Shown here one piece after another: positions 12,477 to 59,481 of a stretch of 64,000 bases of DNA. The notes beneath the pieces were generated by a model, which made no database searches, was not told where the DNA came from, and saw nothing but the letters and a program-made list of their open reading frames with translations. The position numbers were made by a program, and so were the translations under genes. The stretch's first letter is position 1. Every line of letters starts with the position of its first letter. The DNA lies in the IMG/VR virus record IMGVR_UViG_3300045125_000168, positions 124,001-188,000 of that record; one strand, written 5' to 3'.

Positions 12477-13246
12477 ATGGATTTTCAAAGAAAAGTTGAA
12501 GCTAAATACCGCATCGTCGCTGCCGATCTTTTGGTTTTTGTCTACGAGACCTTGATGGATAGCGACCTTTGGCAGTTGGTGGTCAAAAAGCTAGGCGATA
12601 AAGCGGGCACTCCCGATAAAATCCTCGGCTACCGCGAGATCAGCGTCGAAACAAACGACGGACCTGACTACCACACGTTAGTCAAAGATCCTGACGAGGA
12701 CGTGGAAGGCTTGGTCTACAGGATCAAACCAGAAGGTTTGGAAAAAGCTCGACCTCTGGGAAAGCCAGTATGAAAGAAAACTTTTATTTTACAAAGTGGC
12801 CGCAAAGCCTATGTCTACGTTTTGAAATCCGAGTCTTTAAAAGATTACGGCAAAAACACCTCTTATCAGGCAAAGCCCGAAGAGCTAGAAGAAGCCGAAA
12901 AATACACGTCGCTGGGCTTTCCTCTAACACCCATGCCGATCGTCAAGCATGTGCTTGACGCCGTGAAAAAAGGCTGAAGACGGGCAAGCATGAGGTCGAT
13001 AACGAGAAGCTCAATAAGTACCTGAAAAAGGAAACACATGGCGATCTGATGGATTTCGCTCGCTCGGCCATCAAATATTTCAAAGAGGGCAAGCTCGACT
13101 GGGAAGAGGGTCTAGGTCTTTTGCAAGAGGAGTATGCCCCCAAAGGACTGGACATCATCCCCTGGTCGTTCCTTAAACGAGAGCTTCAATTCGCAGGACC
13201 GAGCATAGAAAAAAGACTACCTAGAGCTTTAGTGGAGAAGTTTTAA
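12477..13246 (+). CDS. Leader-bearing gamma-glutamylcyclotransferase (GGCT/AIG2)-like protein (frameshifted)
   Basis: MDFQRKVEAKYRIVAA, then LVFVYETLM, VEGLVY, LDLWESQYER and KAYVYV after a frame switch. Confidence 0.65.
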
Positions 13247-14139
13247 TGGGATTTTTTGACGCTTTGAAATTGAAGTATGGCGTAGAAGGTGGCGTGAACG
13301 ACAAGGACTATCCTTACTACCGGGTCAGCGACAATCCAGCAAACCCTTCAGCGACTGAGGATAATAAACGTCATGATCCTTACGGGGTCTACCTTTTTAT
13401 CAAAAAACAATATGTCGATATCGAGGATTGGGGCGGCAAACGATATCGGTGGGATGCAAAGCTGAAGCCTGGGCTGAAACTACTTAATTTTGCAAAAATG
13501 CCAAAGTCTGTCGGATTCGCTATTCTCAAAGCCGCTGGTTTCAAGACCATGACGGAGATTTGGAATCTACATGCGCTTAAGCAAGGAAGTCGTTATGACA
13601 TTCCCAAAGAAGAAGTGTCCCATTTTTTCTATCCTCTCAACCCCAGTGAAGATAATCCCAGCGAAGAACAGTTACAAAAAATAGCAAATAAAAACATCTC
13701 AAATAATCCGAATGTCTATAGGATTATTCGTCTCGTCTATCCGACTAAAATAAAGACTAATCGTAACTTTTCAAAGATTTTTCAACGTCTGGGTTACGAC
13801 GGTATATTGGATTTGGATGGGGCTATGATGACCCTAGAGCCACAGTTAATTGTGTTCAATCCCAAGAATGTCATTTGGCATCAAAGAGAAGAAAACGTCA
13901 TAGATGGAAAGATATATCGACTACCTTTCTCTGAATATAGCCTAGCAAATATATTCATTCGGCAGGGCATAAAAGAGTCGCGAGTCAAAAAAGCGATCAA
14001 AAATTTTATGAGTTTTAACCGTTATTTAGACGATGATGACCCCCAAAAGGATGTTGAGTTTTGGGAAAAGAAAAAATTTGAAGACTTTGAGACTTTCATC
14101 GAAAAAAATATGCACCTGACCAAGAAACAGGTCAGCTAA
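13246..14139 (+). CDS. Leader-bearing ADP-ribosyltransferase-like (ART-PolyVal-like) protein
   Basis: MGFFDALKLKYGVEG; YYR...PYGVYLF...LGYDGI...QLIVFNP. Confidence 0.55.
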   Translation: MGFFDALKLKYGVEGGVNDKDYPYYRVSDNPANPSATEDNKRHDPYGVYLFIKKQYVDIEDWGGKRYRWDAKLKPGLKLLNFAKMPKSVGFAILKAAGFKTMTEIWNLHALKQGSRYDIPKEEVSHFFYPLNPSEDNPSEEQLQKIANKNISNNPNVYRIIRLVYPTKIKTNRNFSKIFQRLGYDGILDLDGAMMTLEPQLIVFNPKNVIWHQREENVIDGKIYRLPFSEYSLANIFIRQGIKESRVKKAIKNFMSFNRYLDDDDPQKDVEFWEKKKFEDFETFIEKNMHLTKKQVS

Positions 14140-14172
14140 GGAAAAGCGGCCAAAACCAAACGGGGAATCATC

Positions 14173-14535
14173 ATGAGCTTCCTATTTAAAGTGCAAAGTC
14201 GCTACCAATTAACGGCAAAATCCATGAAGTTAAAGGGTGTTAAATTAAGTCATTCTTGGAAAAAAATCACAATGAATTATGGATTTATGCCAAGTACAAC
14301 GGGAAGACCATAGGTTCTTTGTTTGTAGAGTCAGATTTCGACGAAATGCGACCTACACACGTAGAAGTGGAAAAAATATAGGCGCAAAGGTATTGCGACC
14401 GCTATGTATGTGTACGCTGAAAAAATAACAGGCGGCAAATTCACTTACCCTGAGGAAGAAGGCCCTTGGGCAGATTCTGTTAGTGAGGAAGCTATAAAAC
14501 TATGGAACCAACCTAATAGACCTTTCGGGAACTAA
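14173..14535 (+). CDS. Leader-bearing GNAT acetyltransferase (frameshifted, absent from ORF track)
   Basis: MSFLFKVQSRYQLTA; RRKGIATAMYVYAEK acetyl-CoA motif; SEEAIKLW. Confidence 0.65.
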
Positions 14536-14556
14536 TAGATCATCCCCCAAGCCCCT

Positions 14557-15051
14557 TTGAGTCTAGTGTATCAGTCAAAAAGCCTAGAGACGACGTTAGT
14601 CAAAATAAGAGATAAAACGGTGCAGGAAAAACCATGGTATCTCTATCTTTTGTATCATAGCGTCTCTAACCTAACTTATGTGGGCATTACAACAGAGGTT
14701 GCAAGAAGACTAAGGCAACATCGGCAAGAAATTCGTGGTGGTGCAAGGTACACAAAAAGAGTGCAAGACAGATTTCCAGGATCACCACCATGGGATCTGG
14801 TCGTAGCTCTCGGCCCCTTTCAGAATCGCAGCGAAGCCACGCGCTGGGAGCGGCTTGTCAAAATGCGCTGCCGAGGCATTACCGCGAGGCGAGAGGCGAT
14901 GCTTTCCCTATCTCTGGAGCAACATCCACGGCAGTTCACGGCAAAGCAAAAAGAAAAATTTCCAGTACCCAATGGTCTCAGTATCTTAGAAAAAAGAAGC
15001 CCTGAGAGTGCGAACTCCCAGGGTCTTTCTTTTCTGCGGATCGCAAATTAG
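14557..15051 (+). CDS. GIY-YIG nuclease (Slx1/YhbQ-like)
   Basis: WYLYLL...TYVGIT...RRLRQH...GGARYT...RSEATRWE; likely GTG start near 14619. Confidence 0.85.
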   Translation: MSLVYQSKSLETTLVKIRDKTVQEKPWYLYLLYHSVSNLTYVGITTEVARRLRQHRQEIRGGARYTKRVQDRFPGSPPWDLVVALGPFQNRSEATRWERLVKMRCRGITARREAMLSLSLEQHPRQFTAKQKEKFPVPNGLSILEKRSPESANSQGLSFLRIAN

Positions 15052-15911: not shown

Positions 15912-15979
15912 GGCGGACCTCCCTATTTGGACATGTACATTTAATCTTGGCCGCTTGGTCAATTAAAGGGAAGCACAAT

Positions 15980-16846
15980 ATGCGGAAGGGAATTATTCTA
16001 GCAGGCGGTTCAGGAACACGGCTTCATCCTGTGACCTTGGCGGTGAGCAAACAGCTTCTGCCTGTCTTTGATAAGCCGATGATCTATTACCCTCTGTCTG
16101 TGCTGATGCTCGCAGGTATTCGCGAGATTTGTGTGGTTTCAACGCCTGAGGATCGTGCGGCCTTTCAACGGCTCTTAGGCGACGGCTCGCAGTGGGGTAT
16201 TTCTCTGACATACTTGGTCCAACCAAAACCCGAAGGACTTGCCCAAGCGTTTTTGATTGCGGAAGAGTTTATCGCGGGGCAACCGTCTTGCTTGATTCTG
16301 GGTGATAACCTTTACTTCGGCCATGGCTTAACCAAAGTTCTTAAAAAGACCAACGCTCGGCTAGAAGGGGCCACGGTCTTCGGCTATCTTGTCAAAGACC
16401 CCGAACGCTATGGTGTCGTGGAGTTCGACCGCGAAGGACGAGTGGTGAGCCTTGAAGAAAAACCAGCGCAACCCAAATCCCCGTATGCCGTTACGGGGCT
16501 TTATTTTTACGATGCTCATGCCGTGGAGTACGCCAAGACGTTGAAACCTTCGCCTCGTGGTGAACTGGAGATCACCGATCTCAATCGCATCTACTTAGAA
16601 AAGGGTACTTTGAACGTCGAGACTCTCGGGCGTGGTTATGCATGGCTGGACACAGGCACTCATGAGTCTCTGCTCGAAGCCTCAAATTTTGTCCAAGCCG
16701 TGGAACAGCGGCAGGGATTGAAGATCGCTTGCCCCGAAGAGATCGCCTTTCACCAGGGGTGGATTTCTAAGGAAGCCTTGGACCATGCTGCCGAAAAACT
16801 CAAAAAGAGCACCTATGGGGCTTATCTCAAAAATATGATTATATAG
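15980..16846 (+). CDS. rmlA: Glucose-1-phosphate thymidylyltransferase
   Basis: [42 protein letters not shown]. Confidence 0.97.
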
Positions 16847-16908
16847 TTGATATTATGGAATTTTTCAGATCGCTATTGGCTTGGGCAGGCTCCTGAGCTA
16901 GAAGCTGA

Positions 16909-17904: not shown

Positions 17905-18026
17905 ACATGCACAATAATTTAGAAGATGTAAAAACAGAGAATCTGAGATAAATTGCAGAAAGGCTAGAGCCTAAGTTCAACGAAAATAAAAGGTCTGAAG
18001 AAGAAGAAATTTTAGAAAAAAAGGTT

Positions 18027-18512: not shown

Positions 18513-18601
18513 AGGAGCGCATCGAACGTCACCCACGAGGACAAGAACTCCTTGCCCGTGTCGAGAATCCTAGCTAACGTCCTACCACAAAATTAGAATG
18601 T

Positions 18602-20710: not shown

Positions 20711-22059
20711 TCACCGAAGATTCTCGCCGGAAGCCCCTGGCTTTAGCCATGGGGAGGAAGGCGAGCCTTTCAAATACCTATAGTTATAGCCATCTTTTCT
20801 TTGTGAGACTCTAAAGTACCTATGAGATATTCCTTGTACTCGTCCCTGTCCCGTCGAAATATCAAAAGAACCAGTAGCTCGACAAAGTACCCTTCCTTTG
20901 TGTCTTCCAGCCTTTTTTCCCGAGGGAACTACAGCAATGACCATATCCCCAGTCTCAAAACCAAAGTGCTTTTTCATTGCGGAGCGATGCCTTACTGGGA
21001 AACCATATTTGTTCGTACCACAGAATTGGCGACTCCCGTGACCCGTTGATTTAATCTCAAGAACGTGCATCTCGGGATTGAGCCTAACCTCCGATCCGCT
21101 ACTACCCACACAGGCTGCGTCAATCCAGTGATCTTTTGGGTACTCATTTTTAATCCGATTGAACTTGGTCTGTGCTCCTGTTCCTGTTGAAACAACTAAA
21201 GAAACTTTCTGGAGCCCATTCAAGAGTGCATTTCGTGTTGCATTAACCGCTGCGGTTGAAGCTAGGGATCTTTTAGCCTGAGATAGTATTTTTTCAAGAA
21301 TTTCTGGTTTTTTTGAGAGGAAATCTGCGACAGACTTTGTGCCTTTCGCCTCATTACAAGGACGACAGGAAAGAGTCAGATTGGAAACTCTGTTAGAACC
21401 ACCCTTAGACTTTGGTTTAATATGCTCAACCTCTAAAGGTACATTCTCTGCTTCGCAGTAAACACACCTGCGCCCCCACTTTTCCAATAAATATTCTCGA
21501 ACCTCATATCCTTGAAGAGCCCCTTGTTGATACTCAACCCCTGATACTTCGGGATTCTCCATTTTTTGTGTGTCAAATTTAACTCTCTCAAGAGCTAAGG
21601 ATGCAATAGGAGAAAACTTAGAAAGTCGAGTAACCCAGGTCAGGGTAGTTTGTAGTCGGTGGTCAAGCGAGGGTGGTAGCCAACCTGTAGCCTTTGGACG
21701 ATTGTCAAACCTTGCTTTTCGATACCGTGTTTTTCTGTTTCTCCTCGACCTTCGAAGCTGTCTTCTTGAAAGAAGGCTACCTTTGATTTCTTGCCCCCTA
21801 TGAACAAGGTTCATTGCAAAAGAACTCTGTTCTGCCTCTTATGAATAAGAACCATTCCTGTTGTCTTAGCACCTGGATCAATTTTAGCTTCAAACGGAGC
21901 AGGCTTTCCTGCCTCCGTCCTCTTTAGAATGATAGTAAAGGGAAATTTTCGCAGGATTGCTGCTTTGCCATTTTTCAAAAGTTGTCTGGCACGAGCAGGA
22001 GTACACGGTGTTAAAGGCTTCCGATTAGTATCAAGAACAAAAACACAATTCTGTCTCAA
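20711..22059 (-). CDS. iscB: RNA-guided endonuclease IscB (one frameshift near 21815)
   Basis: PLMP-like KPLTPCTPARAR, RuvC-I IDPG, RRXRR helix, HNH EHIKPKSKGGSN..SNL, RuvC-III HWIDA. Confidence 0.93.
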
Positions 22060-22579: not shown

Positions 22580-24577
22580 TCAGGCATAATAGAAGTCCAC
22601 ACCGCCTACGGTCCTCGGATGCTCGATAGCAGATTTTACCGTGCTCCAATCGAGGCCATAATGCACGGCAGCATCCTTGATTGTTTTGAAATACAAGTTC
22701 TCTGAGGTTCGCACGGCCCTTTCCTTGCTCGGCTTCTGCTTGTGCTCCTCAAGCTCATACTGAAACACCACATCCTGCTCTTTTGCCAGAACAGGCTCTT
22801 TATGCGTTAAAGACCAAGTGACGGTGTTCGGATGGATATCATAATGCTCGGCAGCTTCCTTGACCGTCTTGAAATGCAGACCGTTTGAGCAAAAGCACGG
22901 TCTGCACCGAGTCGGGTGATCTCTTTTCTTTCCCTTGAATTTGTGACTCAAGTTGTCCCGCACACTGGAGTCCTGCATCCGTCGTTTTTGTGCCAGAGAC
23001 TTTAAGCTGGGTGCCTTGCCGTTGACCATCTCCCATCGCTCTTTCACATCACTTCGAGTGCGACCATTGAACAACATGCTCAGGTAGCTCTTACTCACAC
23101 CCAACTTCTTCGCAACATCCTCTTGGCTTTGCAACTCTTTAAAAACAAGGTCAAAGGCTTGCAGCAATACCTCGTCTCGGATGAAATTTTTGTCGAGCTT
23201 TTTGTCCTTGATATACTCAGTTGAGACCTCTTTTGCGGTCTTTCCCGTCACGATCGTTGTCACCTGAGTTGGTGTAAGTCCAAGCTCCTGCGCAATCTCG
23301 ATATTTGTCACACCATCTTCATAGCGTTTTTTCAAAACCTGAGAGGCGACATCCAGATCGACTTTTTTGTCGTTGGTGTAGACAAAGGATTTTCCAGTCG
23401 AGGCTTCATATCTGGCCTTGATCTCTGGACGCATTTGTCCATTTAAGACGTACCATACATATTGTTTGGTCACATCTAATTTTTGCGCAATTTCCGTGGC
23501 GGGAAGACCAGAATCATATAGTTCAAAAATCGTTAAGACTTCTTCGTCATTGAGGGTTTTTTGTTTTTCTAAGTCCTGGTTTTCCTCAAGCCATTTTTGA
23601 CGAATTTCAGGTCTTACTCGGCCCCATATTACAGAATTTATTAGATCTCGATTAAGACCTATTTTTTTGCTTATTTCTGCATATTTTAGACCTTGCTTTC
23701 GTAAGTTGAACGCTTCAAACAAAACGTCTTCAGGGATTCTCAATGCGATGTAGTCGGGAGCGTAAGGATCGTTGTAGCCAATTTCTTTGTTTGTTGATTG
23801 GTATTTTCTAATCCAATAATTTTCCCTCTCTGTCAAATCCGCTATAGGTACTCGTTCAATCTCAGAGATACTGCATCGATAATTGCAATTCCGCATAGCT
23901 TCATGAACGGCCATGGTGGAACCATTTCGTGCGGAACTTAAATGACCTTTATATCGGTAATCGATTCCATTGCTCGTTTGCCCGATGTAAACCTTACCGT
24001 TTTCAAATTCAATTTTATAAATAACTCCGTTTGTTTTGTGTTCCCTGTGAAAAACAAATTCAAAGATAGCCTTTCTTGCGTCTATAACTTTGGTCAAGCC
24101 TAAGGTATTCGCATGTTCTGCTTCGCTAACTTCGAGTTTCGTGGCCTCACGCCATACTCTTTTTTTATGAAAGAACTCCCCGTCTTTTTCATAGTGATAG
24201 CTTTGTTTCGCAAAGCCTTTAAAAATGAAGTTATTTCTGAATACGTTCATTTTCTCTGATGTTGAATCCAAGTGAACCAGCAGACCAATTATTGAAGTAT
24301 GTTTTTGAAGGTATTTAAGTACCTTTTGTAAAAAAATCCCTTCAAGGTTCTGTGGCTCAACCCATAGGAGCGATATCTCCAGGTAGGCCGTGCGAAGATA
24401 TTCCGGCTGGTAAGCAGATAACGGCGAAACTAAAAGCACACCAAGAATACGAGAGTCATCCTCGTCCTTCTTTAGGGCGAAGCAGTATTTCACCGTAGAG
24501 GGGATGGTTTGGTGGTTTTCTTCCAGGAGTTTTTTAATGCTTCGGGTGAACGTGACGGATTTTACAAAGTAGCTCAT
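22580..24577 (-). CDS. Homing endonuclease-like fusion: degenerate Mom-like domain, GIY-YIG, and HTH/NUMOD1 repeats
   Basis: GVIYKI...GKVYIGQT...R...ERENYWI...GYN; several HTH repeats; FKTVKEAAEHY and FKTIKDAAVHY. Confidence 0.8.
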   Translation of the reverse strand: MSYFVKSVTFTRSIKKLLEENHQTIPSTVKYCFALKKDEDDSRILGVLLVSPLSAYQPEYLRTAYLEISLLWVEPQNLEGIFLQKVLKYLQKHTSIIGLLVHLDSTSEKMNVFRNNFIFKGFAKQSYHYEKDGEFFHKKRVWREATKLEVSEAEHANTLGLTKVIDARKAIFEFVFHREHKTNGVIYKIEFENGKVYIGQTSNGIDYRYKGHLSSARNGSTMAVHEAMRNCNYRCSISEIERVPIADLTERENYWIRKYQSTNKEIGYNDPYAPDYIALRIPEDVLFEAFNLRKQGLKYAEISKKIGLNRDLINSVIWGRVRPEIRQKWLEENQDLEKQKTLNDEEVLTIFELYDSGLPATEIAQKLDVTKQYVWYVLNGQMRPEIKARYEASTGKSFVYTNDKKVDLDVASQVLKKRYEDGVTNIEIAQELGLTPTQVTTIVTGKTAKEVSTEYIKDKKLDKNFIRDEVLLQAFDLVFKELQSQEDVAKKLGVSKSYLSMLFNGRTRSDVKERWEMVNGKAPSLKSLAQKRRMQDSSVRDNLSHKFKGKKRDHPTRCRPCFCSNGLHFKTVKEAAEHYDIHPNTVTWSLTHKEPVLAKEQDVVFQYELEEHKQKPSKERAVRTSENLYFKTIKDAAVHYGLDWSTVKSAIEHPRTVGGVDFYYA

Positions 24578-24764: not shown

Positions 24765-25853
24765 TTAAGTACGTTGTCCGCGAACGCATGCCCTGGCATT
24801 CACCACGATTTGACTTTCGATCTGTTCCATGTACCATCCTCTCCAGCTTTGGCCGAGAGGAGCACCGAGAGTATTTTCGACGGTGAGGGGCTTACGCTCC
24901 ATCACGACGCCAAGAGCTTTCGGGGTACCGAGGAAGTAGACTTCGCCCGGATTCAGCACTTGGAGGGTCTCGTACCTGAAACCATCGGTCATCAGGGTGA
25001 CGCCGAAGAAGTTTCCGAGCACACCTTCCATAATCAACTGATGTTTAGAAACTGGATCGTAGTAAGAAGCAAAATGGTCATCGGTGAGGATATCGTTGTA
25101 GAGGTCGATGGCGATCAGGGCGTGTTGGCAAGGAATCGTCCAACGGGCGATCTGAGTGCGCATGGATTGGAAAACAGAAGGCGTGAAAGCGTTGAAATAC
25201 ACGAGGTCGTTGTATGCGGTAGCGGCTGCGTCGAAGAGAGCCTTGGTGCGCAAGTCTTCTTGACGAAGGATTTGTTCCAGACCGTCGTTGTACTTGTGCT
25301 CAAGCAGGTCCGTATCTGCGAGTTCAAGTTCGAGGTTGTCGATGCGGATGTTAGCGAGCAGGTAAGCATCGGGAGGCGTCACGTAGTTTTGACGCACATA
25401 GGATGCGACAACGGTCGGGGAGGAGTGCGCGATGTAATAAGCGAGCACGTCTTTTTTGCGAACGGCAATGCGAGCGATGTCGCCTCGTTTGATCGGCTTG
25501 AAGCCGAGCAGCTTACGGGTGAAGCCTTCGCGGCCCAGGGCTTCATAGATTTCTTCGGTGACGGTTTCGCCGAGGGCGAGCCATTTCTCACCAGTTTTGT
25601 CGTTGATCGCGTCTTCGAGGATCGCTTGACGTTCAGCGATTACGGAACGACGCTCGTCAGAAGACAGGGCTTCGGTTTCTTTGCGGGCCACTTCACCGGA
25701 GCGAACGCCATCGACGAGGTTTTTGATTTGGTGCAAGAGGTCTTGCTTGGAGGAAGCGTTGATTTCGCCACCAGCGCCCACGAGGCGCTCACCGCCGCGA
25801 GGGCGGAACTCGGTTGCGAGTGTTTTTGGACGGGCTGCACGATTGATTCGCAT
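24765..25853 (-). CDS. Major capsid protein
   Basis: ~362 aa with strong codon bias, GGAG RBS and its own terminator; HK97-like layout (EQILRQED; GVLGNFFGVTL...PGEVYF). Recalls phiRSL1/PaBG-like jumbo phage capsids, from memory only. Confidence 0.8.
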   Translation of the reverse strand: MRINRAARPKTLATEFRPRGGERLVGAGGEINASSKQDLLHQIKNLVDGVRSGEVARKETEALSSDERRSVIAERQAILEDAINDKTGEKWLALGETVTEEIYEALGREGFTRKLLGFKPIKRGDIARIAVRKKDVLAYYIAHSSPTVVASYVRQNYVTPPDAYLLANIRIDNLELELADTDLLEHKYNDGLEQILRQEDLRTKALFDAAATAYNDLVYFNAFTPSVFQSMRTQIARWTIPCQHALIAIDLYNDILTDDHFASYYDPVSKHQLIMEGVLGNFFGVTLMTDGFRYETLQVLNPGEVYFLGTPKALGVVMERKPLTVENTLGAPLGQSWRGWYMEQIESQIVVNARACVRGQRT

Positions 25854-26192
25854 GGGAACTTGTCTCCACAATGTTTTTAAGAGTTTTTGGAAAAAGAGAT
25901 CGTTTTACTACTGCAACCCCAGGACGAATTTTTATTCGCCTGATGAATCGGCTAGACAAGGGAGACTTTCGCTTTCCCAGCCTTATAATTGAGTTATGTC
26001 CTCGCGGTCTTTAGAGCGCAGAGGCACTAATTAGGTAAAAGGGGTGACTTCTAAAATAATCTTATCGGTCAATTTGCGAGGCGTCAAATTCGCTGGTTTT
26101 TTGTGTATAACTAACTGTAATTGTTGTTGGAAATTGTCTCAAGTTTACGTTCGGTTGTACCGATAGGTAGGCGTTAAACTTGGGAGAGTACC

Positions 26193-27505: not shown

Positions 27506-28072
27506 TTAGGGGTCGTAGCCTTGCTCGTGCAGGGAGTTGCCATCGGTGAAGACTTGAGAGGCTCGGACCAACTTACTTTTGATTTTGAACTTTCCGTTCA
27601 AACTACTTTCACCGTGGTCTTTCGCGTATTTTCGATTGATCGTCACCCAGTCCCCTAGGTTGATCTCGGGGTAAAAGCCTCTTGGTGTGGTTTCTTTTTG
27701 AGGTCATCCTCAGGTCCGAGAGTTCATCATAGGATTTACCTTGAAAGTTGCTCGGCATTTTCCCGTACTTCAAATGGTATTTGAGAGCTTTTTCTAGTTC
27801 AGAGATTTTCTCGGTGGTCGAGGGTTCATAAGGTACCGCTCGATAGATGCGAACTTTGGCGTTTGGCTTTCCTTTGAGGGCTTTTAGATAGACCAGGATT
27901 CGTGGTCGTAGGGTTGACCATCCCCATAATACTGCGCACCCTTGGGGCCATAAAAATCCTCGGGGTATGTGCCTTTGAGATCATGCAGGGGCGCACCGGA
28001 ATCTTTCCCAGGGGCTTGATGCTGCATCCGGTAGTCGTCGGCTAAAACCAATAGTTTTTTCAAAAACACCAT
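27506..28072 (-). CDS. Leader-bearing ART-like polyvalent-protein domain (frameshifted)
   Basis: MVFLKKLLVLA, then IYRAVP...GDWVTI...YAKDHG...TDGNSLHEQGY. Confidence 0.6.
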
Positions 28073-28380: not shown

Positions 28381-28463
28381 TGGTGGAAGAGGGGATTGAA
28401 CCACCGAAGACGAAAGTCAACAGGTTTACAGCCTGCCCCCATTGGCCGCTCGGGCACTCTTCC
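28381..28463 (-). tRNA. tRNA-Tyr (GTA) with encoded CCA
   Basis: GGAAGAG acceptor stem, anticodon arm GCAGG-CTGTAAA-CCTGT, long variable arm, GGTTCAA, ends ACCA. Confidence 0.9.
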
Positions 28464-41362: not shown

Positions 41363-41655
41363 ATTAGTGAGTTCGGAGCCTAGCTAGGGTAATCAAACGT
41401 CATACTCGTCAAAGTTTCCATATTTGAGATACCAATCGATCATTTTTTTGCTTCATTTATATCGTGGGCGATTGGCTGTCCCTGATTTAGTATCTCTCCA
41501 AGGTACTTACCAATTTTTTGGTCATAAATTATATAATTTTCATAGTCATCATCTTCTGCAAGATCAATATCAAAGCCTTTGTACACCCTTGCTGTACTTG
41601 AGGTAACCATTTTCGGCTGATATTTCTTTTTGACTCGCTGCAAAAACATGTTCAA
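41363..41655 (-). CDS. Leader-bearing small hypothetical protein
   Basis: MFLQRVKKKYQP; AAGATT at 41686-41691; 3' end approximate. Confidence 0.55.
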
Positions 41656-46900: not shown

Positions 46901-47210
46901 CGGCTTCCTGATGGGCCTTTTCAACTTCTGGGGAATTTTTCTTTGGCGCATTCTTTTTGCTTTTTCTGACGTGAATCGCTGTCGTCTTCGTCGGTGTCCC
47001 CCTCGTCATCCTGCTTTTCAAATGTTTTGATGCTCTTATGTTTCTCAAAGTTTTATTTTTCTGGACAATCATTGCAGGTCGTCGATAGACTTGATTTGCT
47101 TTTCAACGTGGATTCCTCTTCCCAGGTTCATAAAAGTGCCAAGAGTTACCCCAACCCAAGACCGCATATCGTTCTGCCACTTTTTCCAAAAGTTGAGTCA
47201 AGGAAGCCAT
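43940..47210 (-). CDS. Leader-bearing large alpha-helical repeat protein (heavily frameshifted)
   Basis: MASLTQLLEKVAERYAVLG; many fragments with I.D..IL..I helical repeats. Confidence 0.55.
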
Positions 47211-51595: not shown

Positions 51596-52077
51596 TTAGA
51601 GTTCGTTGCGCAGAAGGGATTGAAGCTCGTGCGTGTGTTCCTGCTCTTTGGCCAGGATGTTTTCTAATTCTATTTTAAGGGGGAGTCTTCGCCAAGCTGC
51701 GAAATGATCTTCCCGTATAAGGCAACAGCCTCTTGCTCAAACTTGAGTTGCAACCGAATCAGGTCTTCAATCTTAGACCCCTTCGGAAGCTCGGGAATGA
51801 TGTGGCGCTTGACCGTAGGTCGTTCACCCATTCCGACGATGTAGCGTTGCAGGAGAGAAATATGCGAGGCTTCTTCTCCGGCATTTTCCTCGAAATCCGC
51901 AGCAATCGCTGGGCTACAAAGACCGAGGAGCGATTCTTTATAGGCGTAGTAAAGATCCCACTGCCTAAATTCGCCCATCAAGGCTTCTTGCAAAAGTCCA
52001 AGAACCCCCACGTCCTGAGCCGATAAGAGATCGGCAGGAGTAGCGGCTAAGACATATAATTTGCGCAAGAAAGACAT
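51596..52077 (-). CDS. Leader-bearing ferritin/bacterioferritin-like protein (frameshift near 3' end)
   Basis: MSFLRKLYVLA; E...Y, EEASH, E.EAVALY and EQEH di-iron ligand pattern. Confidence 0.75.
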
Positions 52078-52112: not shown

Positions 52113-52388
52113 TTATTTTTTCAAACTGCTGAGATACAACCACTTCGCAAGAGCCGTGCGAATCTGTTTTTTGACGACCGCGAACTGCTCGGCGTTCTGA
52201 GCTTTTTCCAACTCTGTTTTAACTTTGTTCTCAATGCGAGATAAGTGACCAGCAAAGTCACTGCGCATTTTGTCTAAATCTTGGTTGACCACTTTCCACG
52301 CCTCTTCACCCAAAAACTCTTTGGTCGCGGGCGATAAGGTCGAACCAAGCGCCTTTTTGCGGTTGACTTTTTTCAAGAATGAAACCAT
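52113..52388 (-). CDS. Leader-bearing hypothetical protein
   Basis: MVSFLKKVNRKKALG; AAGATT at 52421-52426. Confidence 0.6.
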   Translation of the reverse strand: MVSFLKKVNRKKALGSTLSPATKEFLGEEAWKVVNQDLDKMRSDFAGHLSRIENKVKTELEKAQNAEQFAVVKKQIRTALAKWLYLSSLKK

Positions 52389-52417: not shown

Positions 52418-52945
52418 CTAAATCTTGATGAGAGGCCAACTCTGATCGCGGGGATTGACTAAGAGAGGAGTCTCAGGCCATTCGATACCAAGCGCAGGGT
52501 CATCCCACCGGAGACCGTCTTCGGCACTTTTTTCATAAGGGTAATCGACTTTGTACTGAACGATCGCCGTTTCAGACAGAACTAGAAAGCCGTGGGCCAA
52601 ACCTTTGGGGACATAAAGACTCCAGTGGTTGTCCTCATTAAGATGAAACCCAGCCCATTTCAGATAGCTCGGGGAGTCAGGTCGAAGGTCCACAATCACG
52701 TCATAGATGGAACCCGCAACACACCGCACGAGTTTCGCCTGAGCCGATCCACCTTTTTGAAAGTGCAAGCCTCGCAAGGTGCCTTTCATGCTTTTGGACT
52801 GATTGTCTTGAATCCATCTCTCGTGGATGCCTGCGGAGCGGAAGTCTGACAGATTGTACGGGACCAAAAAATGTCCTCGGTCATCCGAAAAAACATCAGG
52901 CTTAAAGATGCAGGCTTGATAGACAGAAGTTGTCAACTTTTCCAC
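52418..52945 (-). CDS. rmlC: dTDP-4-dehydrorhamnose 3,5-epimerase
   Basis: DDRGHF, QDNQSKS, LRGLHFQ, QAKLVRC, GLAHGF. Confidence 0.95.
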   Translation of the reverse strand: MEKLTTSVYQACIFKPDVFSDDRGHFLVPYNLSDFRSAGIHERWIQDNQSKSMKGTLRGLHFQKGGSAQAKLVRCVAGSIYDVIVDLRPDSPSYLKWAGFHLNEDNHWSLYVPKGLAHGFLVLSETAIVQYKVDYPYEKSAEDGLRWDDPALGIEWPETPLLVNPRDQSWPLIKI

Positions 52946-53826
52946 AAGCGACCCTTTTCTTGGAGTTCCTCTAAGTGTTCGACTAACCTAATCTTCCAAT
53001 CGACGATATGCTGCGGAGCTAGGGCTTGTGCCTTGGTGGTGTCCAGGGCCGAGAAGGTCGGACGCAAGGCGCGGGCGCGGTGCTCATCACTACTTAAAAA
53101 CGGCTTGACTTTCAGATCGATATTCACCACGGCACTGAGATAGGACGCAATCACCTGAGCCTGATCGCAGCGCGAGGGCACCGTCGTCGCAGAACCCGAA
53201 ACATGGATTAGACCCCGAAGCCGAGCGTCACTGAGCGCCTGGACAATAAAGCCTGCGACATCCTGAGCGTGAGTTGGAAAGCCAAATTGATCGGATACCA
53301 CGGGTATAGAGTTTGAGTTCTTTAAATTGCGGACAATCGCTTCCGGGAACGACGCCCGTGCTCGACCGTACACCCAACTGGTGCGCACCAAAAGAAAAGG
53401 TTTTAAACAGTGCCTGAGAAATAGCTCTTCCCCGAGTAATTTGGTCAGACCATAGACCTGAATCGGCCCCGCTTGGTCGTCCTCACGGTAAGGGATGTGG
53501 TGCTCTTTGCCACCAAAGATATAGTCCGTCGAGATATGCACCACGAGCTTACAGGCTTGAAGCTCCGAACAGACCTTGGCTACCCGTTCGGCAAGAGCCG
53601 CGTTGAGTAGGAAGGCTTGGTGCAAATGCTGCTCGGCCTGATCGACGTTGGTGTAGGCCGCAGCATTGATGACCACTTCAGGGTTCACCGACCGCAGATA
53701 GAACTCCAGGGCCTCTAGGTTCGAGAGGTCACACTCCTGTCTCGTGGGGGCTAAGACAGGGTAGCCGTGCAAAAGTCGCCTAAGCTCCGTGCCGATCAGC
53801 CCTGAGCCACCCAGAATCACGATCAT
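52933..53826 (-). CDS. rmlD: dTDP-4-dehydrorhamnose reductase
   Basis: GGSGLIG, NAAAYTNVD, HISTDYIF, YGLTKLLGE, RTSWVY. Confidence 0.95.
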   Translation of the reverse strand: MIVILGGSGLIGTELRRLLHGYPVLAPTRQECDLSNLEALEFYLRSVNPEVVINAAAYTNVDQAEQHLHQAFLLNAALAERVAKVCSELQACKLVVHISTDYIFGGKEHHIPYREDDQAGPIQVYGLTKLLGEELFLRHCLKPFLLVRTSWVYGRARASFPEAIVRNLKNSNSIPVVSDQFGFPTHAQDVAGFIVQALSDARLRGLIHVSGSATTVPSRCDQAQVIASYLSAVVNIDLKVKPFLSSDEHRARALRPTFSALDTTKAQALAPQHIVDWKIRLVEHLEELQEKGRLWKS

Positions 53827-53980
53827 GTCGAACCTCGCTTGGATTGCTTGACAAACATCTTAGCTTGCTTTTAATTTGTAGACAAATCGCTAAAGCTACT
53901 TTGTGTACGGTAAAAAGGTGTTCTCATGGAGGGCACCTTTTTTGTCCCAAAAGATTCAACACGACCTAGAGGAGTCTTTC

Positions 53981-54471
53981 ATGCAGACCTTCCTGAAACG
54001 TGTTGCTGATAGATATAGTGTCGTGGCTGAGATTGGCTCGGGCAAACACGCCCTGACAACCGACGAGAGCGGGAAGTTTTGGGGGAACGCAGGTGCAGGG
54101 GGAGTGTTTTGGGCTAAGGAGACGGGCCGTATCCTTCTAGCGTACCGCAGCGCCTTGGTGAATGAGCCGCACACTTGGGGTGTGTGGGGTGGGGCCGTGG
54201 ACAAGGGCGAATCGCCAGAAGATACCGTGAGACGAGAAATCAAAGAAGAGACCAAGTACGCTGGGGCCTATCAACTCAAGCCGCTCTACGTCTACCAAAA
54301 CGGCAACTTTCGTTATCACAATTTTCTTATTACCGTGCCAAAAGAGTTTGACCCGATCCTCTGCTGGGAAACCGAAGACTTTGGATGGTTTGACTTAGGG
54401 GCTTTCCTAAGCCGCTGCACTTCGGTCTCAAAGCTCTTTTGCCGCACTTAGAAAAAGAAATCAAAAGGTGA
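53981..54471 (+). CDS. Leader-bearing Nudix hydrolase
   Basis: MQTFLKRVADRYSVVAE; Nudix box GAVDKGESPEDTVRREIKEET. Confidence 0.9.
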
Positions 54472-54476
54472 CCCCT

Positions 54477-55067
54477 ATGTTGTACAGCTTCCTTGAACAG
54501 GTATCGGCAAAGTACGCCGTGATTGCTGAACCCACCCTGACCCTGTGGCATGGTGGTAACCTGGAGTTTTCCTCGGAAAGCATCTCACATCGGGGTGGTA
54601 GATGGGAGCACGGTCCTGGCCTTTATCTCACCACGCACTATGATACAGCAAAAAAATATGCCAAAGGGTCTCGCAAGCTCTATCAAGTTGTCGTTCGGGA
54701 GGGAAAAGATCTTTCCGACGTGAACTTACCGATCGATGCTGTTCATGCTTTTATAGATGAGTATTTTATTCGAGCGCGTAAGCGAGACTTGTTAGCGCGA
54801 ATCGAAAAGCATGTGGTGAATAACAAAATCAACGCCGAGACTTTTTTGAATATTACGATCAATGAAAATGGCATCAGAAACACGGATACCGATCGGTTGA
54901 GAAATTTTTTAGTCCAGCAAGGAGCCGACTATCTGGTTGTGGATAACCCTTTTGGTTGGGGCGAAAGAATGCTTGTGCTTTTCAACATGAAAAACATGGT
55001 TAGTAAGAAAAGAATAACGCCAAAAGACACTATTGAAGTGTTTGATCTGCCGAAAGAGTTTGCCTAA
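54477..55067 (+). CDS. Leader-bearing ADP-ribosyltransferase-like protein (H-Y type, ART-PolyVal-like)
   Basis: MLYSFLEQVSAKYAVIAE; LWHGG...GPGLYLT...AKKYA...LVLFN. Confidence 0.65.
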   Translation: MLYSFLEQVSAKYAVIAEPTLTLWHGGNLEFSSESISHRGGRWEHGPGLYLTTHYDTAKKYAKGSRKLYQVVVREGKDLSDVNLPIDAVHAFIDEYFIRARKRDLLARIEKHVVNNKINAETFLNITINENGIRNTDTDRLRNFLVQQGADYLVVDNPFGWGERMLVLFNMKNMVSKKRITPKDTIEVFDLPKEFA

Positions 55068-55095
55068 TTTCGCAGATGATCTTTTTTGCGGTCCC

Positions 55096-56950
55096 TTAGT
55101 CCTCTGCGGCCTCGGGTTTTACCAGGATCTTCTTGATCTCGTCGGCGGCTTCGTTGATAAAATCCTCGTCATCAACGTCGATAGCGTAAAGTGTCCGCTC
55201 TTCATCTTCGTCCTCGACTTTATAAACGTACTTGATAACCCAACCATTACCGTCATGTTCAGGTTCGATGATCTCCGTGATGTTATCCTGCTCAATTTTT
55301 TCTTTGATATTGTCCTCTAGCTCGGACTCTAGTTGACCTTTTAAAAGATCGCGGACGGTTTCGTTTAACTTATCTTCGTCGATAACTAGAGCGAGACCAG
55401 CATCAACCTCAAAGTAAACATAGCCACTTCTCACAGATCCGCGTGATAGGTGTCTATTCACTTTATCTTGTTGCTCTTCCGAGAGGCTTTCCCACTCTTC
55501 TGCAAGGTCTTCTGGTAACTCCGTTTCTGTTTCACCTTGATGGTAATAGGCGAGAGCATAGTTTGGTGGATAGGACTCTTCATAAGTTTCAACCTGACAG
55601 CACTTAAAGAGACTTTCTTTTCTAACACATCCAAGACGTATCGGACTTTATCTTCGACATCGCTATCCACTTTATCTAAAATTTGCCTTTCAGCTAGATC
55701 GTTAAAACTCTCTTCCAATATATATTCATACTCTCCGAGCCAGTCTTCACTAGAATAGTGTTCTTCTTCTCCTTCAATATATTCATCAATTCTCTGAGCC
55801 AAATCCTCCAGATCAACCCCTGATGGAGCCAATTCAGGACGTTTTTCGATCAGCTTATCTTTTAAACCCTCGTCTAAGTCTGAGATCCTAAAATTGTTTT
55901 GAGCCGCGTACCCGCCCCCTTTGAGCTTGGTGATTTTGTCATCCTCTAAGAGCTTGACGATATAAGGATGCAGGTTCTCTTTGGGCTTCTGGTTGCTAAA
56001 CCCCTTCATTTCGCCAAGAGAGCCATCGGAGTTCCAAATAAAGGTCGCGTGGGGCTTCCACATTTTTTTGCCTTTTTTGGTCGTAATCGGCTCGCGCAAA
56101 GAGAGGATTCTTTGTCCCTTCCTGGCTGAAGGCACGTTGCCGCAGTGACGCATGGCGGCTCCCTCTTTCTCACACCCAGCACGGTCCAAAAGATGCCACT
56201 GCCAACCATCTTCAAACTTAAGGAAGGTCTTGTCGGCCCCTTGCTCAACCAAGCGGGCTTTTTCTTTTTGCAAAGACTCTGACTTTTCCGTGAGACTTTT
56301 AAGGTCTTCAAGCAGCTTATCGGACTTTTGGTCCTTAAATGTATAATTCAGAACAGGCTGATAATTATTGACCTCAGCGTTGCCAAGATAGTGGGTGATG
56401 TCAGTGAGCAGTTGGTCGATGTCTGAGGACTTTAAGGGATCTGGTGGCTCTTTACCTTGAAAGGCGGGCCGAGTGCCCCGTGCCTTCTTTAAGAACCACA
56501 CGATCCGATCCTCTCTTTTGAGATTCTTGATCGACTTAGCAATAAGAGCATCCCAATACTCCGGTTGGTCCAACCGATTGGAACCTGGATTCTCGTAGAA
56601 CGGTTTCAGCATCATCTTCAGCCGTGGCTTGCGACTAGCTAGGACTTCAATTCTTTGCAAAAACTCAAGTTCATTTGGATTTTCCTTTTTTGCAGCTTGC
56701 GGCTTGAGTAGAAGAGGTTCAATTTGCTTCTTCACGTCTCGAAGGAACTTTTTGTCATCTAACGGGATTTCAAAAAGGACTTTTTCTGCACCATCAACTT
56801 TGTAGTTGAGTTGCCAGGATTCTACATAGTCTTCATTTTCTCGCTCATTCGGACCGTAAATTTTACTTATCTTCTCCGATTTAATTTTCTTTTTGATCGT
56901 GGGCATCTCATCTGCATCGGCATCTCCTGGCAACTTTTGGGATTCATTCA
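55096..56950 (-). CDS. PcfJ-like domain protein with acidic C-terminus (frameshifted)
   Basis: EGAAMRHCGN...ILSLREP...KPHAT...GEMKGFSNQKP...GGGY. Confidence 0.65.
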
Positions 56951-56955
56951 TAATC

Positions 56956-57375
56956 TTACTTTGGAAGCCTAACCATCTCAGCGGACCCCCGCAAAACAAA
57001 CCCGTGGCGTCCGTAGAATTTCTTGAGCCTGCCTAGTGGAGTGCTCCCTTGGCGTCGTGGTCCCACACCGACATGAAGCTGCAAGACCACTTGGTACTTG
57101 TCAGCAAGCTCCGTCAGGTATCGGAGAGCCTCAGTCCCCGCACCTGAGCCTTTCTCAGCGGCACTGAGCCAGGAGATATAGACCGTGGGCTTGGTCCTCT
57201 CCTTCGTCTCAAGATCTAAAAAGGCACCGCCCTTGGAGGTCTGCAAAGCGTACCCCAGACCTCGGAAGTAACCCTTGGCCTTGGTTTTGAACTCGTCTAC
57301 CAGCTTTTGCGCTGGGGCATCCTCGGCACATAACACGGGATATTTGCGCTGCACGGAAGAAAAAACATGCCGCAT
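56956..57375 (-). CDS. Leader-bearing GNAT acetyltransferase
   Basis: MRHVFSSVQRKYPVLCAE; KGSGAGTEAL...LADKY...LKKFYGRHGF. Confidence 0.75.
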   Translation of the reverse strand: MRHVFSSVQRKYPVLCAEDAPAQKLVDEFKTKAKGYFRGLGYALQTSKGGAFLDLETKERTKPTVYISWLSAAEKGSGAGTEALRYLTELADKYQVVLQLHVGVGPRRQGSTPLGRLKKFYGRHGFVLRGSAEMVRLPK

Positions 57376-57490
57376 CCTCTGTAGTCTCGTGAGCTAGATA
57401 AATCTTGCTCAAACGACTTCGTGAGGTGCAAGTTGCATTTTGTCTTTGTTCATATTATATCATCATTCGGTCCAAGGGGAGACAACCATC

Positions 57491-57720
57491 ATGGTCGAAA
57501 AATGGATAGGCATCAAAGAGATCGCGGAGCACCTGGGCATTTCCGTGGTGACGATCTATAGATGGGTTGAAAATGGAAAAATCCCTTGCCACAGGGTCGG
57601 CAAACTCTGGAAGTTCAAACCTTCAGAGGTCGATGCCTGGGTGAGCAGCGGGCAGGCTTCGGGAACGAGTAAGACGAAAAAGAAAAAGAAGAAAAAAGCT
57701 CTAAATAATTATTTTACCTT
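57491..57720 (+). CDS. Excisionase-like HTH DNA-binding protein
   Basis: IKEIAEHLGISVVTIYRW...IPCHRVGKLWKF...VDAW. Confidence 0.85.
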
Positions 57721-58182
57721 AAAACCTTCACCCATCATCTCTTCTTTGAGAATTTCAAGCATATTGTCAGCAGCATAGTCGATCTCCGGGTTCACAATAC
57801 CGTCTGCGTTTTTCTTTTCACCCGTTTCGATATTGGTCGTAAGATCACCCACCCGCGTAATTTTTATACCTCGGGCCGAACCGTCCTCACACTTATAGGT
57901 GATCGAAACGGTGAAAACCTTGTCGTTCACCTTTTTCAGTTTCGCATCGACCTTGCACTCGACACCCGCATCCTGAAAAACTTTGGTCACGTCTTTGGCA
58001 AACGTATCCAACTTTTTGTCCGAAAACGTCATGCCGTGGGCAAAGGTGCTAAAAAGTCCTGTTCCGACGAGAACAGTGACCGTTTTTTTCAACTTATTCA
58101 AAAAGTCAAATTTGGCTTCAATCCTAGAACAATAGGAATAGGAGATTTTTTTGGCTTGGACTTTTTGAATATAACTGGCCAC
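57709..58182 (-). CDS. Leader-bearing protein with a hydrophobic segment
   Basis: MASYIQKVQAKK...SRIEA; TVTVLVGTGLFSTFAHG. Confidence 0.55.
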   Translation of the reverse strand: MASYIQKVQAKKISYSYCSRIEAKFDFLNKLKKTVTVLVGTGLFSTFAHGMTFSDKKLDTFAKDVTKVFQDAGVECKVDAKLKKVNDKVFTVSITYKCEDGSARGIKITRVGDLTTNIETGEKKNADGIVNPEIDYAADNMLEILKEEMMGEGFKVK

Positions 58183-58209
58183 TTGAAATCTCCTTCGATT
58201 GCCGCTGAA

Positions 58210-58944
58210 TTATCTGGAGCCGATTTTTTCCGCAATCTCAAAGAAGTTAGAACCATCCTTTTTCAGTAAAGGTATCTTGCTACGATCAATCCGCCACATC
58301 TGTGATGGCATCAGGATGCCTTCATGCGCGATGTTACCGTACTCATCTATAAGCTCAAGTTTCTGCTTGTCTGAAAGCAAAGGAAGAAGGATCTTTCCTG
58401 CTTTTATCCAAGCATCATAACACCCTTGAATAACTTCTTCGAGAAGAGTGGCGTTGTATTCTTCAACAGGTTCTACTTCAAGGTAGTCTTCCGCTAAATC
58501 TCTGAGCCACTTCCTCTTTTTCTTATCGAAGGCATCACGCGCAGCTTCACCGATCTGATCCTCGTCAGGATGGATATTCTGTAGTTCTTTACCAGAAATA
58601 ACAAACATGAATCCATAACGACCGCGTTTCTTTATCAAATCATATATGTATTCACTGTTAGTTCCTGCTACTGCCGCACCGAGAGCATAATGAAGTGCAT
58701 AGCCGACATTTTTGCTGATATATACCCTGTCATCTACTGCTCGGCTAAAACCTTTAGTGCGTGACATATTTGGTTTGATGCCATGCTTCCATATTTTTTG
58801 CGCTTTTCTCTCGGTGGTGGTCCCATGGTAATAAAAAGCGTTTTTTATTGCGTCATGTGGCAAGGCACTTTCGCAAACATCAACGTCTTCGTTGAGTGAA
58901 TATTTGGCCAATACTTTTGTGAAAAAGTTCACAAAATACTCCAT
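58210..58944 (-). CDS. Leader-bearing ART-like protein
   Basis: FFTKVLAKYSL; YYHGTT...GIKP...VYIS...ALHYA. Confidence 0.6.
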   Translation of the reverse strand: MEYFVNFFTKVLAKYSLNEDVDVCESALPHDAIKNAFYYHGTTTERKAQKIWKHGIKPNMSRTKGFSRAVDDRVYISKNVGYALHYALGAAVAGTNSEYIYDLIKKRGRYGFMFVISGKELQNIHPDEDQIGEAARDAFDKKKRKWLRDLAEDYLEVEPVEEYNATLLEEVIQGCYDAWIKAGKILLPLLSDKQKLELIDEYGNIAHEGILMPSQMWRIDRSKIPLLKKDGSNFFEIAEKIGSR

Positions 58945-58968
58945 GAAATTTGTATACCAGGAAAGATC

Positions 58969-59481
58969 CTACTTCGACTTCATGATATAACGAGTCTGCA
59001 CTGTACCCGGTAAGACTATGACCTCTTTTTCTTCGAGGACATCCTGCCGCAAAGCACTGTCAATGCCAGAGACTCTCGTTATATCGACAAGTATTAATGA
59101 TGGAGGAACTATGGCTTCCAGAACAATACCCTTCGTATGTGACTTAATATATCCACCAGAGTATGGGAAAAAGGCGAAACTCCGGGCTGCGTCTAGATCT
59201 TTGGACCAAGATGAAAGCTGGTCCGAGTGCAAAGAGAAGCTCTCACCTAACTCCAGTTTTTTGCCTGCTAAAGCTCGGATTAGTTTTTCAGGAGTTTTGT
59301 AATTACCTACCGAGATACCGCGATATAGCTTAAGAGAACGCTTGGGACTGGCTTCTTTTAAGCTCTCAATGATGTCAGGAGATGGTGGATCTTTGATATC
59401 AGAAATCCATTCTTCCAGCCATTCAATGGCATCATACCCCGGCCAAGTTTTTGCGATGATTTGTTTTAAAAAACTTTTCAT
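58969..59481 (-). CDS. Leader-bearing R-S-E type ADP-ribosyltransferase
   Basis: MKSFLKQIIA; LYRG...SSWS...EEKEVIV. Confidence 0.75.
   Translation of the reverse strand: MKSFLKQIIAKTWPGYDAIEWLEEWISDIKDPPSPDIIESLKEASPKRSLKLYRGISVGNYKTPEKLIRALAGKKLELGESFSLHSDQLSSWSKDLDAARSFAFFPYSGGYIKSHTKGIVLEAIVPPSLILVDITRVSGIDSALRQDVLEEKEVIVLPGTVQTRYIMKSK

Follow-up and report, generated by a model that had tools for sequence, protein, structure and literature searches.

In phage T4 the capsid-targeting sequence (CTS) MKTYQEFIAE serves to dock the internal proteins and the ADP-ribosyltransferase (ART) Alt to the scaffolding core, and gp21 then removes it (PMC3012670; PMC5694885), with a single cut by the head protease (PMC8442874; PMC5694885). 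Internal proteins in T-even phages have been described as highly diverse defence proteins, and the conserved CTS is their sole common feature (PMC3012670; PMC5694885). Many head-internal proteins of phiKZ, 201phi2-1 and SPN3US are targeted by N-terminal propeptides, which are cleaved after Glu by the prohead protease (PMC5694885, PMC10052503). In polyvalent proteins 2-15 effector domains are carried on one polypeptide; a GNAT domain typically adjoins an ART in them, and packaging into the capsid was predicted (Iyer et al. 2017, PMC5512222). The present work concerns a short N-terminal peptide (the tag) on otherwise unrelated genes in a 64,000-nucleotide stretch of DNA (the window), which comprises bases 124,001-188,000 of the 236,430-bp IMG/VR record IMGVR_UViG_3300045125_000168. 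The tag was found at the start of 18 open reading frames (ORFs), 14 in the window (Table 1) and 4 elsewhere in the record. It is real, portable across unrelated cargo, under selection at the peptide level and conserved in a phage clade.

ORFs of the window are named by the position of their first base; the four tagged ORFs outside it start at genome coordinates 26424 (+), 58317 (-), 200204 (+) and 200702 (+). The leader has an 11-residue consensus, F-[LF]-x-K-V-x-A-K-Y-x-V. Its core was described by the regular expression F-[LF]-x-[KQR]-[VIL]-x-A-[KR]-Y-x-[VLI], starts 1-6 residues past the initiator; in most cases a short, variable linker with much Ala, Glu and Asp comes next. A shorter variant, MxFL[KR]KL[YL]VLA, is present on a ferritin-like protein and on ORF 28072. 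When 28 tags from this genome and its relatives were aligned, position 5 was V, I or L throughout (28/28); position 1 was F in 26 tags, position 8 was K or R in 25, position 4 was K, Q or R in 24, positions 9 (Y) and 11 (V, L or I) agreed in 23 each, position 7 was A, S or L in 21, and position 2 was L or F in 16. The core expression was matched at 19 sites in the six-frame translation of the genome, compared with 2.5 ± 1.6 sites (maximum 8) in 200 shuffles, an excess that is somewhat inflated because the expression was composed after the hits were known; 11 of the 19 sites lay no more than 6 residues from a Met (binomial p = 2e-7). When the tagged proteins were compared with one another by all-against-all BLASTP, the tags alone matched and not the cargoes. 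Codons varied among the copies at nearly every position while the residues were retained, so that the conservation is one of peptide and not of DNA, and no conservation was found in the DNA upstream of the tagged genes. In the AlphaFold2 (AF2) model of ORF 58944 the tag region had low confidence (predicted local distance difference test, pLDDT, <50) and formed a short helix apart from the folded domain. A tag-like sequence, ISSFFRQVAAKYPQPL, was also seen at window positions 5093-5164 (-), at the C-terminal end of ORF 5093-5710 and just ahead of a SIS-like gene, and may be either the frameshifted start of a tagged gene or a match by chance.

Other large contigs (63, 83 and 262 kb) carry homologues of ORFs 58944 and 13246 that also bear the tag, with leaders such as MSFKYKIQSKYIV, MRFVRKVYAKYDVLPAE and MSFLSKVELKK, and further unrelated tagged genes are present on these relatives' contigs (63-262 kb). 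Homologues on distant contigs, at 35-55% identity, have kept the tag, which, judged by this distribution, is a clade character of large uncultured phages. The fused relatives P0003 and P0039 have the order tag-domain-tag-domain, and in both the internal tag falls precisely on the junction that precedes the second domain (P0039, ...ASFSEKVKRKYVAAE/SYPYYRVS; P0003, ...FDKVHAGYEGLPAE/AAP; here and below the slash marks the boundary between leader and domain). One gene of a further relative (L026, 13320) starts with two tags in tandem (FKDAVAKKYKIVA...FMQRIQARYTIQAEE). Both arrangements fit a modular unit of tag plus linker that gets processed. The first domain of P0039 resembles a 2H phosphoesterase (two H-x-S motifs), a likeness that was confirmed by nothing and was set aside. 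Behind a row of KH, SLT and thioredoxin genes, one relative (L022, 3252-4490) carries a 58944-like ART and the P0007 contig a fusion of tag, domain, tag and 13246-like domain; different tagged cargo in the same slot suggests cassette exchange at a fixed post-thioredoxin locus.

The cargo was assigned from profile searches, structure comparisons and motifs; broken genes were kept unrepaired and their pieces searched one by one. Two tagged ORFs are solid candidates for the ART fold on the strength of predicted structures. For ORF 59481 the Atlas structure gave template modelling (TM) scores of 0.58-0.66 to DRAT, ADPrib_exo_Tox and MuF-ART clusters, and YRG, SSWS and EKE in its sequence correspond to the Arg, Ser-x-Ser and Glu-x-Glu motifs of the R-S-E clade. 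ORF 58944 has 33 homologues, and H40, Y75 and E128 were invariant across 26 sequences. With its AF2 model (pLDDT 89.4) every top Foldseek match and all of the top 50 VIA rows were chains of the ART superfamily (Z 5.3-7.1), including pertussis S1, Tpt1/KptA, TreTu, DarT1, Arr, scabin and PARPs. The Z values are middling, and the predicted membership of the H-Y-E clade rests on the uniformity of the hits and the conserved triad.

ORF 54477 is probably an H-Y-E ART as well and a distant member of the ART-PolyVal/DUF3990 group. Its Pfam matches to DUF3990 (3.8e-5; 23.9 bits) and ART-PolyVal (9e-4; 20.4 bits) lie below the respective cut-offs of 32.2 and 31.2 bits, and its homologues gave the same sub-threshold matches. 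H25, Y50 and E163 were invariant in the family alignment (A3), and hhalign with the 58944 family (E 0.009) aligned the HG and Y motifs. The A3 profile also matched PDB 9xph_B, named 'PHIKZ101', weakly (E 0.032). ORF 13246 is a lead only: Atlas language-model features reached 0.89 to ART-PolyVal clusters, with TM ≤0.47 on a poor model, and there was no Pfam or PDB match and no hhalign link to the other ART families. All eight members of its family (8/8) are tagged. For ORF 28072 the ART assignment found no support. Exhaustive searching with its domain returned 60 hits, among them complete proteins of ~205 aa as well as giant ones, and the AF2 model of an intact homologue, P0055 (pLDDT 89.7), had no significant fold match; the best Foldseek match in PDB had E 0.25, the best AFDB clusters hit had E 0.033 at TM 0.30, and a wide VIA search returned only helical-hairpin matches (Z ≤5.2). 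A single tRNA-Tyr (GTA; window 28381-28463, -) lies directly upstream of this ORF. Sequence searches of PDB with the 58944, 59481, 57375 and 54477 families were uninformative. On the 83-kb relative contig (L021, 5473-6275) a tagged 101-aa ORF is followed by a gene with the precomputed Pfam label AcrIF11_ADP_ribosyl; a Pfam scan at E ≤ 0.05 failed to reproduce the label.

The Nudix, ferritin and GGACT assignments are solid. ORF 53981 matched Pfam NUDIX at 5.7e-13 (49.5 bits; cut-off 21.1) and PHROG MutT/NUDIX at 1.9e-21, and its Nudix box, GAVDKGE-x7-REIKEE, is intact. ORF 52077, which has its own start and a Shine-Dalgarno-like AAGGTAGAG upstream, matched Pfam Ferritin at 7.3e-7 (29.6 bits; cut-off 24.5). 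The GGACT match of ORF 12477 (22.9 bits; cut-off 22.8) is supplemented by the contig of an 82%-identical relative, where an intact 256-aa gene in the same slot has an unmarked GGACT hit. ORF 57375 is a solid GNAT candidate: Atlas features of 0.94-0.96 and structural TM scores of 0.57-0.74 to GNAT clusters were obtained, KGSGAG (acetyl-CoA motif A) can be read in the sequence, and the ORF matched phrog_10691, a PHROG profile of 3925 positions, at 1e-5; Pfam gave no match. ORF 14173, a gene broken at A7 and A6 runs, is a probable GNAT; an intact relative of it has 129 aa. Its pieces alone had no Pfam match, and the third piece, which contains RRKGIA, matched the C-terminal GNAT of gp205 of the cultured Tunturiibacter jumbo phage Tunturi_5 at 5e-5.

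The first-pass annotation of this DNA had described separate small genes with one shared tag, encoding about five ART-like proteins, two GNATs, a Nudix hydrolase, a gamma-glutamyl cyclotransferase (GGCT) and a ferritin. Its picture of small genes under a common tag was confirmed by the 18 ORFs, the excess over shuffles and the BLASTP matches confined to the tags, and the last three identities by Pfam, the GGCT at the cut-off and with the help of the intact relative. The count of ARTs has to be lowered: ORFs 59481 and 58944 stand on structure, ORF 54477 is probable, ORF 13246 is a lead and ORF 28072 is unsupported. One of the two GNATs, ORF 57375, was corroborated by structure and the other is probable. 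Structural comparison of the mature domains, proposed in the same annotation, thus yielded ART folds for two ORFs and a GNAT fold for one, and no significant match for the modelled homologue of ORF 28072.

Table 1. Tagged ORFs of the window, with strand, leader or motifs, and basis of assignment.
ORF	Coordinates	Strand	Product	Leader or motifs	Basis
12477	12477..13246	+	GGACT-like, broken; frame 1 ends 12773, pieces 12774-12974 and 12959-13243	MDFQRKVEAKYRIVAA...	
13246	13246..14139	+	297 aa, possible ART-PolyVal-like enzyme	MGFFDALKLKYGVE...	Atlas features
14173	14173..14535	+	GNAT-like, 3 frames 14173-14310, 14244-14378, 14365-14532	MSFLFKVQSRYQL...	
28072	27506..28072	-	short tag variant, 3 frames 27887-28072, 27612-27887, 27509-27703	MVFLKKLLVLADD/YRMQHQAPG...	
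41649	41440..41649	-	69 aa	MFLQRVKKKYQPK...	
47210	47103..47210	-	stop after 35 codons, probably frameshifted	MASLTQLLEKVAERYAVL...	
52077	51670..52077	-	ferritin-like, 135 aa, short tag variant	MSFLRKLYVLAA	Pfam Ferritin
52388	52113..52388	-	91 aa	MVSFLKKVNRKKAL...	
53981	53981..54451	+	Nudix hydrolase	MQTFLKRVADRYSVVAE/IGSG...	Pfam NUDIX
54477	54477..55067	+	196 aa, probably H-Y-E ART	MLYSFLEQVSAKYAVIAE/PTLTLWHGG...	sub-threshold Pfam, hhalign
57375	56956..57375	-	predicted GNAT fold, 139 aa	MRHVFSSVQRKYPVLCAE/DAP...	Atlas structure
58182	57709..58182	-	157 aa, GTG start; hydrophobic stretch TVTVLVGTGLFSTFAHG after tag	VASYIQKVQAKKISY...	
58944	58210..58944	-	predicted ART fold, H-Y-E type, 244 aa	YYHGT ... 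RVY ... PDEDQIGE	AF2, Foldseek, VIA
59481	58969..59481	-	predicted R-S-ExE ART, 170 aa	LYRG ... SSWS ... EEKEV	Atlas structure + motifs

The same effector domains were met in polyvalent form, which bears out the likeness to polyvalent-protein domain sets noted in the first-pass annotation. P0043, a protein of 1987 aa, has the 28072 domain beside PBECR5, NUDIX and an ART-PolyVal match below the cut-off, and gp205 of Tunturi_5 (853 aa) joins a 58944-like ART (1.4e-15) to a 14173-like GNAT; its C-terminal end scored 22.9 bits with Pfam Acetyltransf_1, above the cut-off of 20.7. The PHROG profile of 3925 positions matched by the GNAT of ORF 57375 fits the same likeness. In the window each gene carries one effector domain, and two-domain fusions were found only in the relatives P0003 and P0039. 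This shows the window as the one-domain-per-gene end of a polyvalent spectrum, with its relatives as two-domain intermediates. Polyvalent proteins (PMC5512222) thus share with this locus the repertoire of ART, GNAT, Nudix and 28072 domains, and packaging and delivery were predicted for them; unlike their 2-15 domains per polypeptide, the domains here are separate genes, each with its own leader, and no MPTase or Zincin-like processing peptidase was identified here. In other phages ART or Nudix domains are fused to MuF, portal or head-protease proteins (Atlas rows; phrog_15528, phrog_3778). Effectors are tied there to head-assembly proteins for delivery by covalent fusion, whereas here a short portable peptide is used.

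Two of the cargo families were found with T4-type leaders in other phages. In the 28072 family, gp92 of Vibrio Schizotequatrovirus R11Z, a member of the Straboviridae, has the N-terminus MKTYTEFLSE/YHMQHRAP, and the metagenomic homologues P0055 and P0086 begin with MKLFKEFVAE and MKTFEQFVVE. The tag of ORF 28072 stops at the same domain boundary (...VLADD/YRMQHQAP) as these leaders. In the 58944 family the N-termini MKTFKDFILE/MAIP and MRFKQYIHE/MAMP occur. Read from their N-termini, both families carry bona fide T4-type CTSs elsewhere. On a 128-kb AT-rich phage contig (L025, 9354-13232) five neighbouring genes, one of them for a 58944-like ART, start with M[RK][FL]xxY[IL]xE; the set looks like a T-even internal-protein locus whose leader is of T4 type. 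A 54477 homologue and another gene of a further relative (L012, 997 and 9920) share a different leader (..IKEE[LF]xxL), possibly a third leader dialect.

Compared with the internal proteins of T4 (IPI, IPII and IPIII) and Alt, the tagged genes are alike in that a short leader is the sole common feature of unrelated, clustered small proteins and in that ARTs are included, as Alt is in T4 beside anti-defence proteins (PMC3012670, PMC5694885, PMC8442874). They differ in the leader, which is longer here (11-residue core), has another sequence and no fixed terminal Glu, and exists in two length variants; in the size and composition of the set, which is far larger (at least 18 genes) and dominated by enzymes, including ferritin, GGACT and Nudix; in the internal tags of the fused relatives; and in the phage, since no T4-like gp21, gp22 or gp23 was detected in the record. 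The phiKZ-like propeptides are mostly 80-160 residues long, share no single short motif and have a defined A/S/G-X-E site, unlike the tag, and no phiKZ-type head genes were recognised here.

The record is classed as a provirus in IMG/VR, with a CheckV completeness of 87%. One of its proteins is also carried by a 351.6-kb contig, and the record is a cut of this contig of ~352 kb. Its phage genes include a baseplate wedge protein, a head-tail connector, head-decoration-like and tail-fibre-like proteins and an exonuclease; the window comes from a large tailed phage with contractile-tail-type baseplate genes. A search of GenBank phages for a close relative of the record found none. The sequence is strongly fragmented, with only 8 stop-to-stop frames of at least 500 codons and many genes that run on in another frame. 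Of nine frame breaks inspected, eight overlap an A or T run of at least 5 (for instance A7 at 14260, A6 at 14371 and A6 at 12966 in the window); such runs are common, so that the overlap is merely consistent with indel errors and no proof of them. The same neighbouring genes are unbroken in the 82%-identical relative, which suggests either indel errors of the assembly or recent decay. Frameshifts interrupt five tagged genes (12477, 14173, 28072, 47210 and genome 58317). An alternative genetic code was rejected: the breaks are frame changes and not in-frame stops, and recoding of any stop codon gave no specific rescue of long ORFs.

As to the function of the tag, we lean slightly towards a capsid-targeting leader on injected effectors, which would be a functional analogue of the T4 CTS. 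CTSs elsewhere on the same cargo, the clade-wide occurrence of the tag and its internal copies make this the most economical reading. What we infer of head location, cleavage, protease, injection, timing and targets can be put as follows. The leader would mark a set of small accessory proteins and dock each of them to the scaffold or core during head assembly, whereby it would become enclosed in the prohead. A head protease would then probably cut the leader off, and the mature enzymes would remain with the DNA and pass into the host on infection, ahead of phage gene expression. The cargo would comprise at least two, probably three to four, ARTs, two GNAT acyltransferases, a Nudix hydrolase, a GGACT-like cyclotransferase, a ferritin-like protein, an LRR protein and several unknowns, and these may alter proteins or nucleic acids of the host, or use up metabolites related to defence.

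Packaging and injection, which had already been proposed in the first-pass annotation, receive indirect support from the T4-type CTSs on two cargo families and from the co-direction of tagged genes with tail and structural genes. The tagged 57375-59481 cluster runs in the same direction as a downstream tail-like 613-aa protein and a connector gene, and in the 262-kb relative (L015; ENA ERZ27256773 k141_763255) a pair of tagged ART-like genes is flanked by the gene of a 962-aa protein with an endolysin-like domain and by the baseplate wedge gene, all co-directional. This placement beside tail and connector genes and inside a baseplate operon suggests late expression. The tag may plausibly be seen as a novel sequence version of the known capsid-targeting-leader principle, with a set of enzymes expanded to an unusual size, in a lineage that is not T4-like by the tests run. 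A wider proposal is put forward tentatively, at somewhat less than even confidence: an undescribed portable virion-targeting peptide would define a clade of uncultured giant phages and mark a hypervariable arsenal that swaps slots and amounts to ~20 injected enzymes in each genome, including ferritin and gamma-glutamyl cyclotransferase-like classes not known as injected; it would act as an internal processing linker as well; single-domain genes, fusions and polyvalent proteins would form one continuum; and the T4 CTS would be one dialect of a leader code, with cargo families moving between dialects.

Several observations weigh against capsid targeting. The tag is unlike MKTYQEFIAE in sequence and has no fixed Glu; Glu or Asp follows soon after the core in ~20 of 28 tags, compared with ~55% by chance, and no clear cleavage motif was found in them. 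Some tags, such as that of ORF 12477, adjoin the fold without a linker. The helical hydrophobic moment of the tags does not exceed that of shuffled sequences, and the idea of an amphipathic helix was dropped on this ground. The tagged genes of L015 sit among baseplate and not head genes. Finally, the 236-kb record showed no recognisable head maturation protease, scaffold or major capsid protein. PF03420, PF07068, phrog_207 and phrog_138 found nothing in the record, and the control genomes gave no hit with them either; the HK97-type protease and capsid families PF04586 and PF05065 and T4 gp20-24 (tblastn and phmmer) were likewise without a match in the record. A PHROG search of ~40 ORF segments for a head module returned only baseplate, connector, head-decoration-like and tail matches. 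These searches were blunted because about one third of the contig is missing from the record and because of the frameshifts. A T4-like phage was rejected, as these searches of the record gave no signal of gp21, gp23 or gp20.

Two protease-like genes were noted in the record. A broken ClpP-like ORF (Pfam 2e-12; genome 81538-85850, +; L024) is the only candidate besides an S8 peptidase. It adjoins a DNA polymerase-like gene, read by eye, apparently with an HNH/Hint-like insertion. The other gene, at window 10979-12350 (+), encodes a subtilisin-like Peptidase_S8 in three frames directly upstream of the first tag cluster, and is kept at the same position in the close relative, there with 450 aa. 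It has an N-terminal signal peptide and is for this reason an unlikely tag-processing enzyme.

The ClpP-like protease, which lies away from any recognisable head module, can be read in favour of a role of the tag inside the cell and not in virion loading. The tag would then be a shared docking peptide for an intracellular partner: it could serve as a degron recognised by an AAA+ protease of phage or host, which would shorten the lifetime of toxic enzymes, as a signal for a chaperone or for localisation, or as a handle bound by a common inhibitor. Many of the cargoes are enzymes that could be toxic and would need control, the cleavage motif is not significant, and neither a prohead protease nor a scaffold is recognisable in the record. 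Such docking is nevertheless considered unlikely; it leaves unexplained the genuine CTSs on homologous cargo in T4-like phages, the tags at internal domain junctions and the tagged genes in the structural operons of relatives. A still smaller chance is given to loading of the cargo into or onto the tail or baseplate and not the head, with delivery at infection all the same. The position of the L015 genes between a tail protein with a lysin domain and the wedge gene makes it a live rival, to which may be added the beta-helix fibre-like proteins of L026, flanked by tagged genes, and the adjacency of the 57375-59481 cluster to the tail-like 613-aa protein. N-terminal packing signals are present on effectors of extracellular contractile injection systems, and the analogy was proposed for the tag. 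The lumen of a myovirus tail tube is, however, normally occupied by the tape-measure protein, which counts against tail loading. Gene position is, moreover, no proof of position in the virion, and the same cargo families bear T4-type CTSs elsewhere (one in the Straboviridae), the T4 CTS leading to the head core (PMC3012670).

A functionless peptide, left as a by-product of 5'-end recombination or duplication or of shared translation-initiation signals, would be in keeping with the shuffling of gene starts in hyperplastic phage loci and with the clustering of the tagged genes. It is regarded as highly improbable in view of the codons, which differ at almost all tag positions although the residues stay the same, the lack of conservation in the upstream DNA, and the persistence of the tag at internal positions and on 35-55% identical homologues across distant contigs.

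Should capsid targeting, or virion loading in general, prove correct, N-termini alone would suffice to list the proteins injected by an entire clade of uncultured giant phages, which would amount to a catalogue of first-minute takeover and anti-defence enzymes. The small internal proteins of T4 and the giant polyvalent proteins would come under one framework, in which the same effector domains are either singly tagged or strung together. A short portable packaging peptide of non-T4 type would also offer a practical means of bringing foreign proteins into capsids, a use to which the T4 CTS is already put.

Among the other genes of the window, three are homing-endonuclease-like: a GIY-YIG gene at 14557-15051 (+), directly after the broken GNAT gene 14173, an RRXRR + HNH gene at 20711-21814 (-), and a GIY-YIG gene with a string of HTH domains at 22580-24577 (-). 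The stretch 24765-25880 has open frames of 368 codons on both strands, with a Pfam match for neither. Sugar-nucleotide genes are represented by an RmlA-like thymidylyltransferase at 15947-16846 (+; Pfam 2.3e-76), RmlD at 52933-53826 (-; PDB 2.5e-36) and a broken SIS/GmhA-like gene at ~4640-5100 (-), recognised by eye; they may serve the modification of DNA or of a surface glycan.

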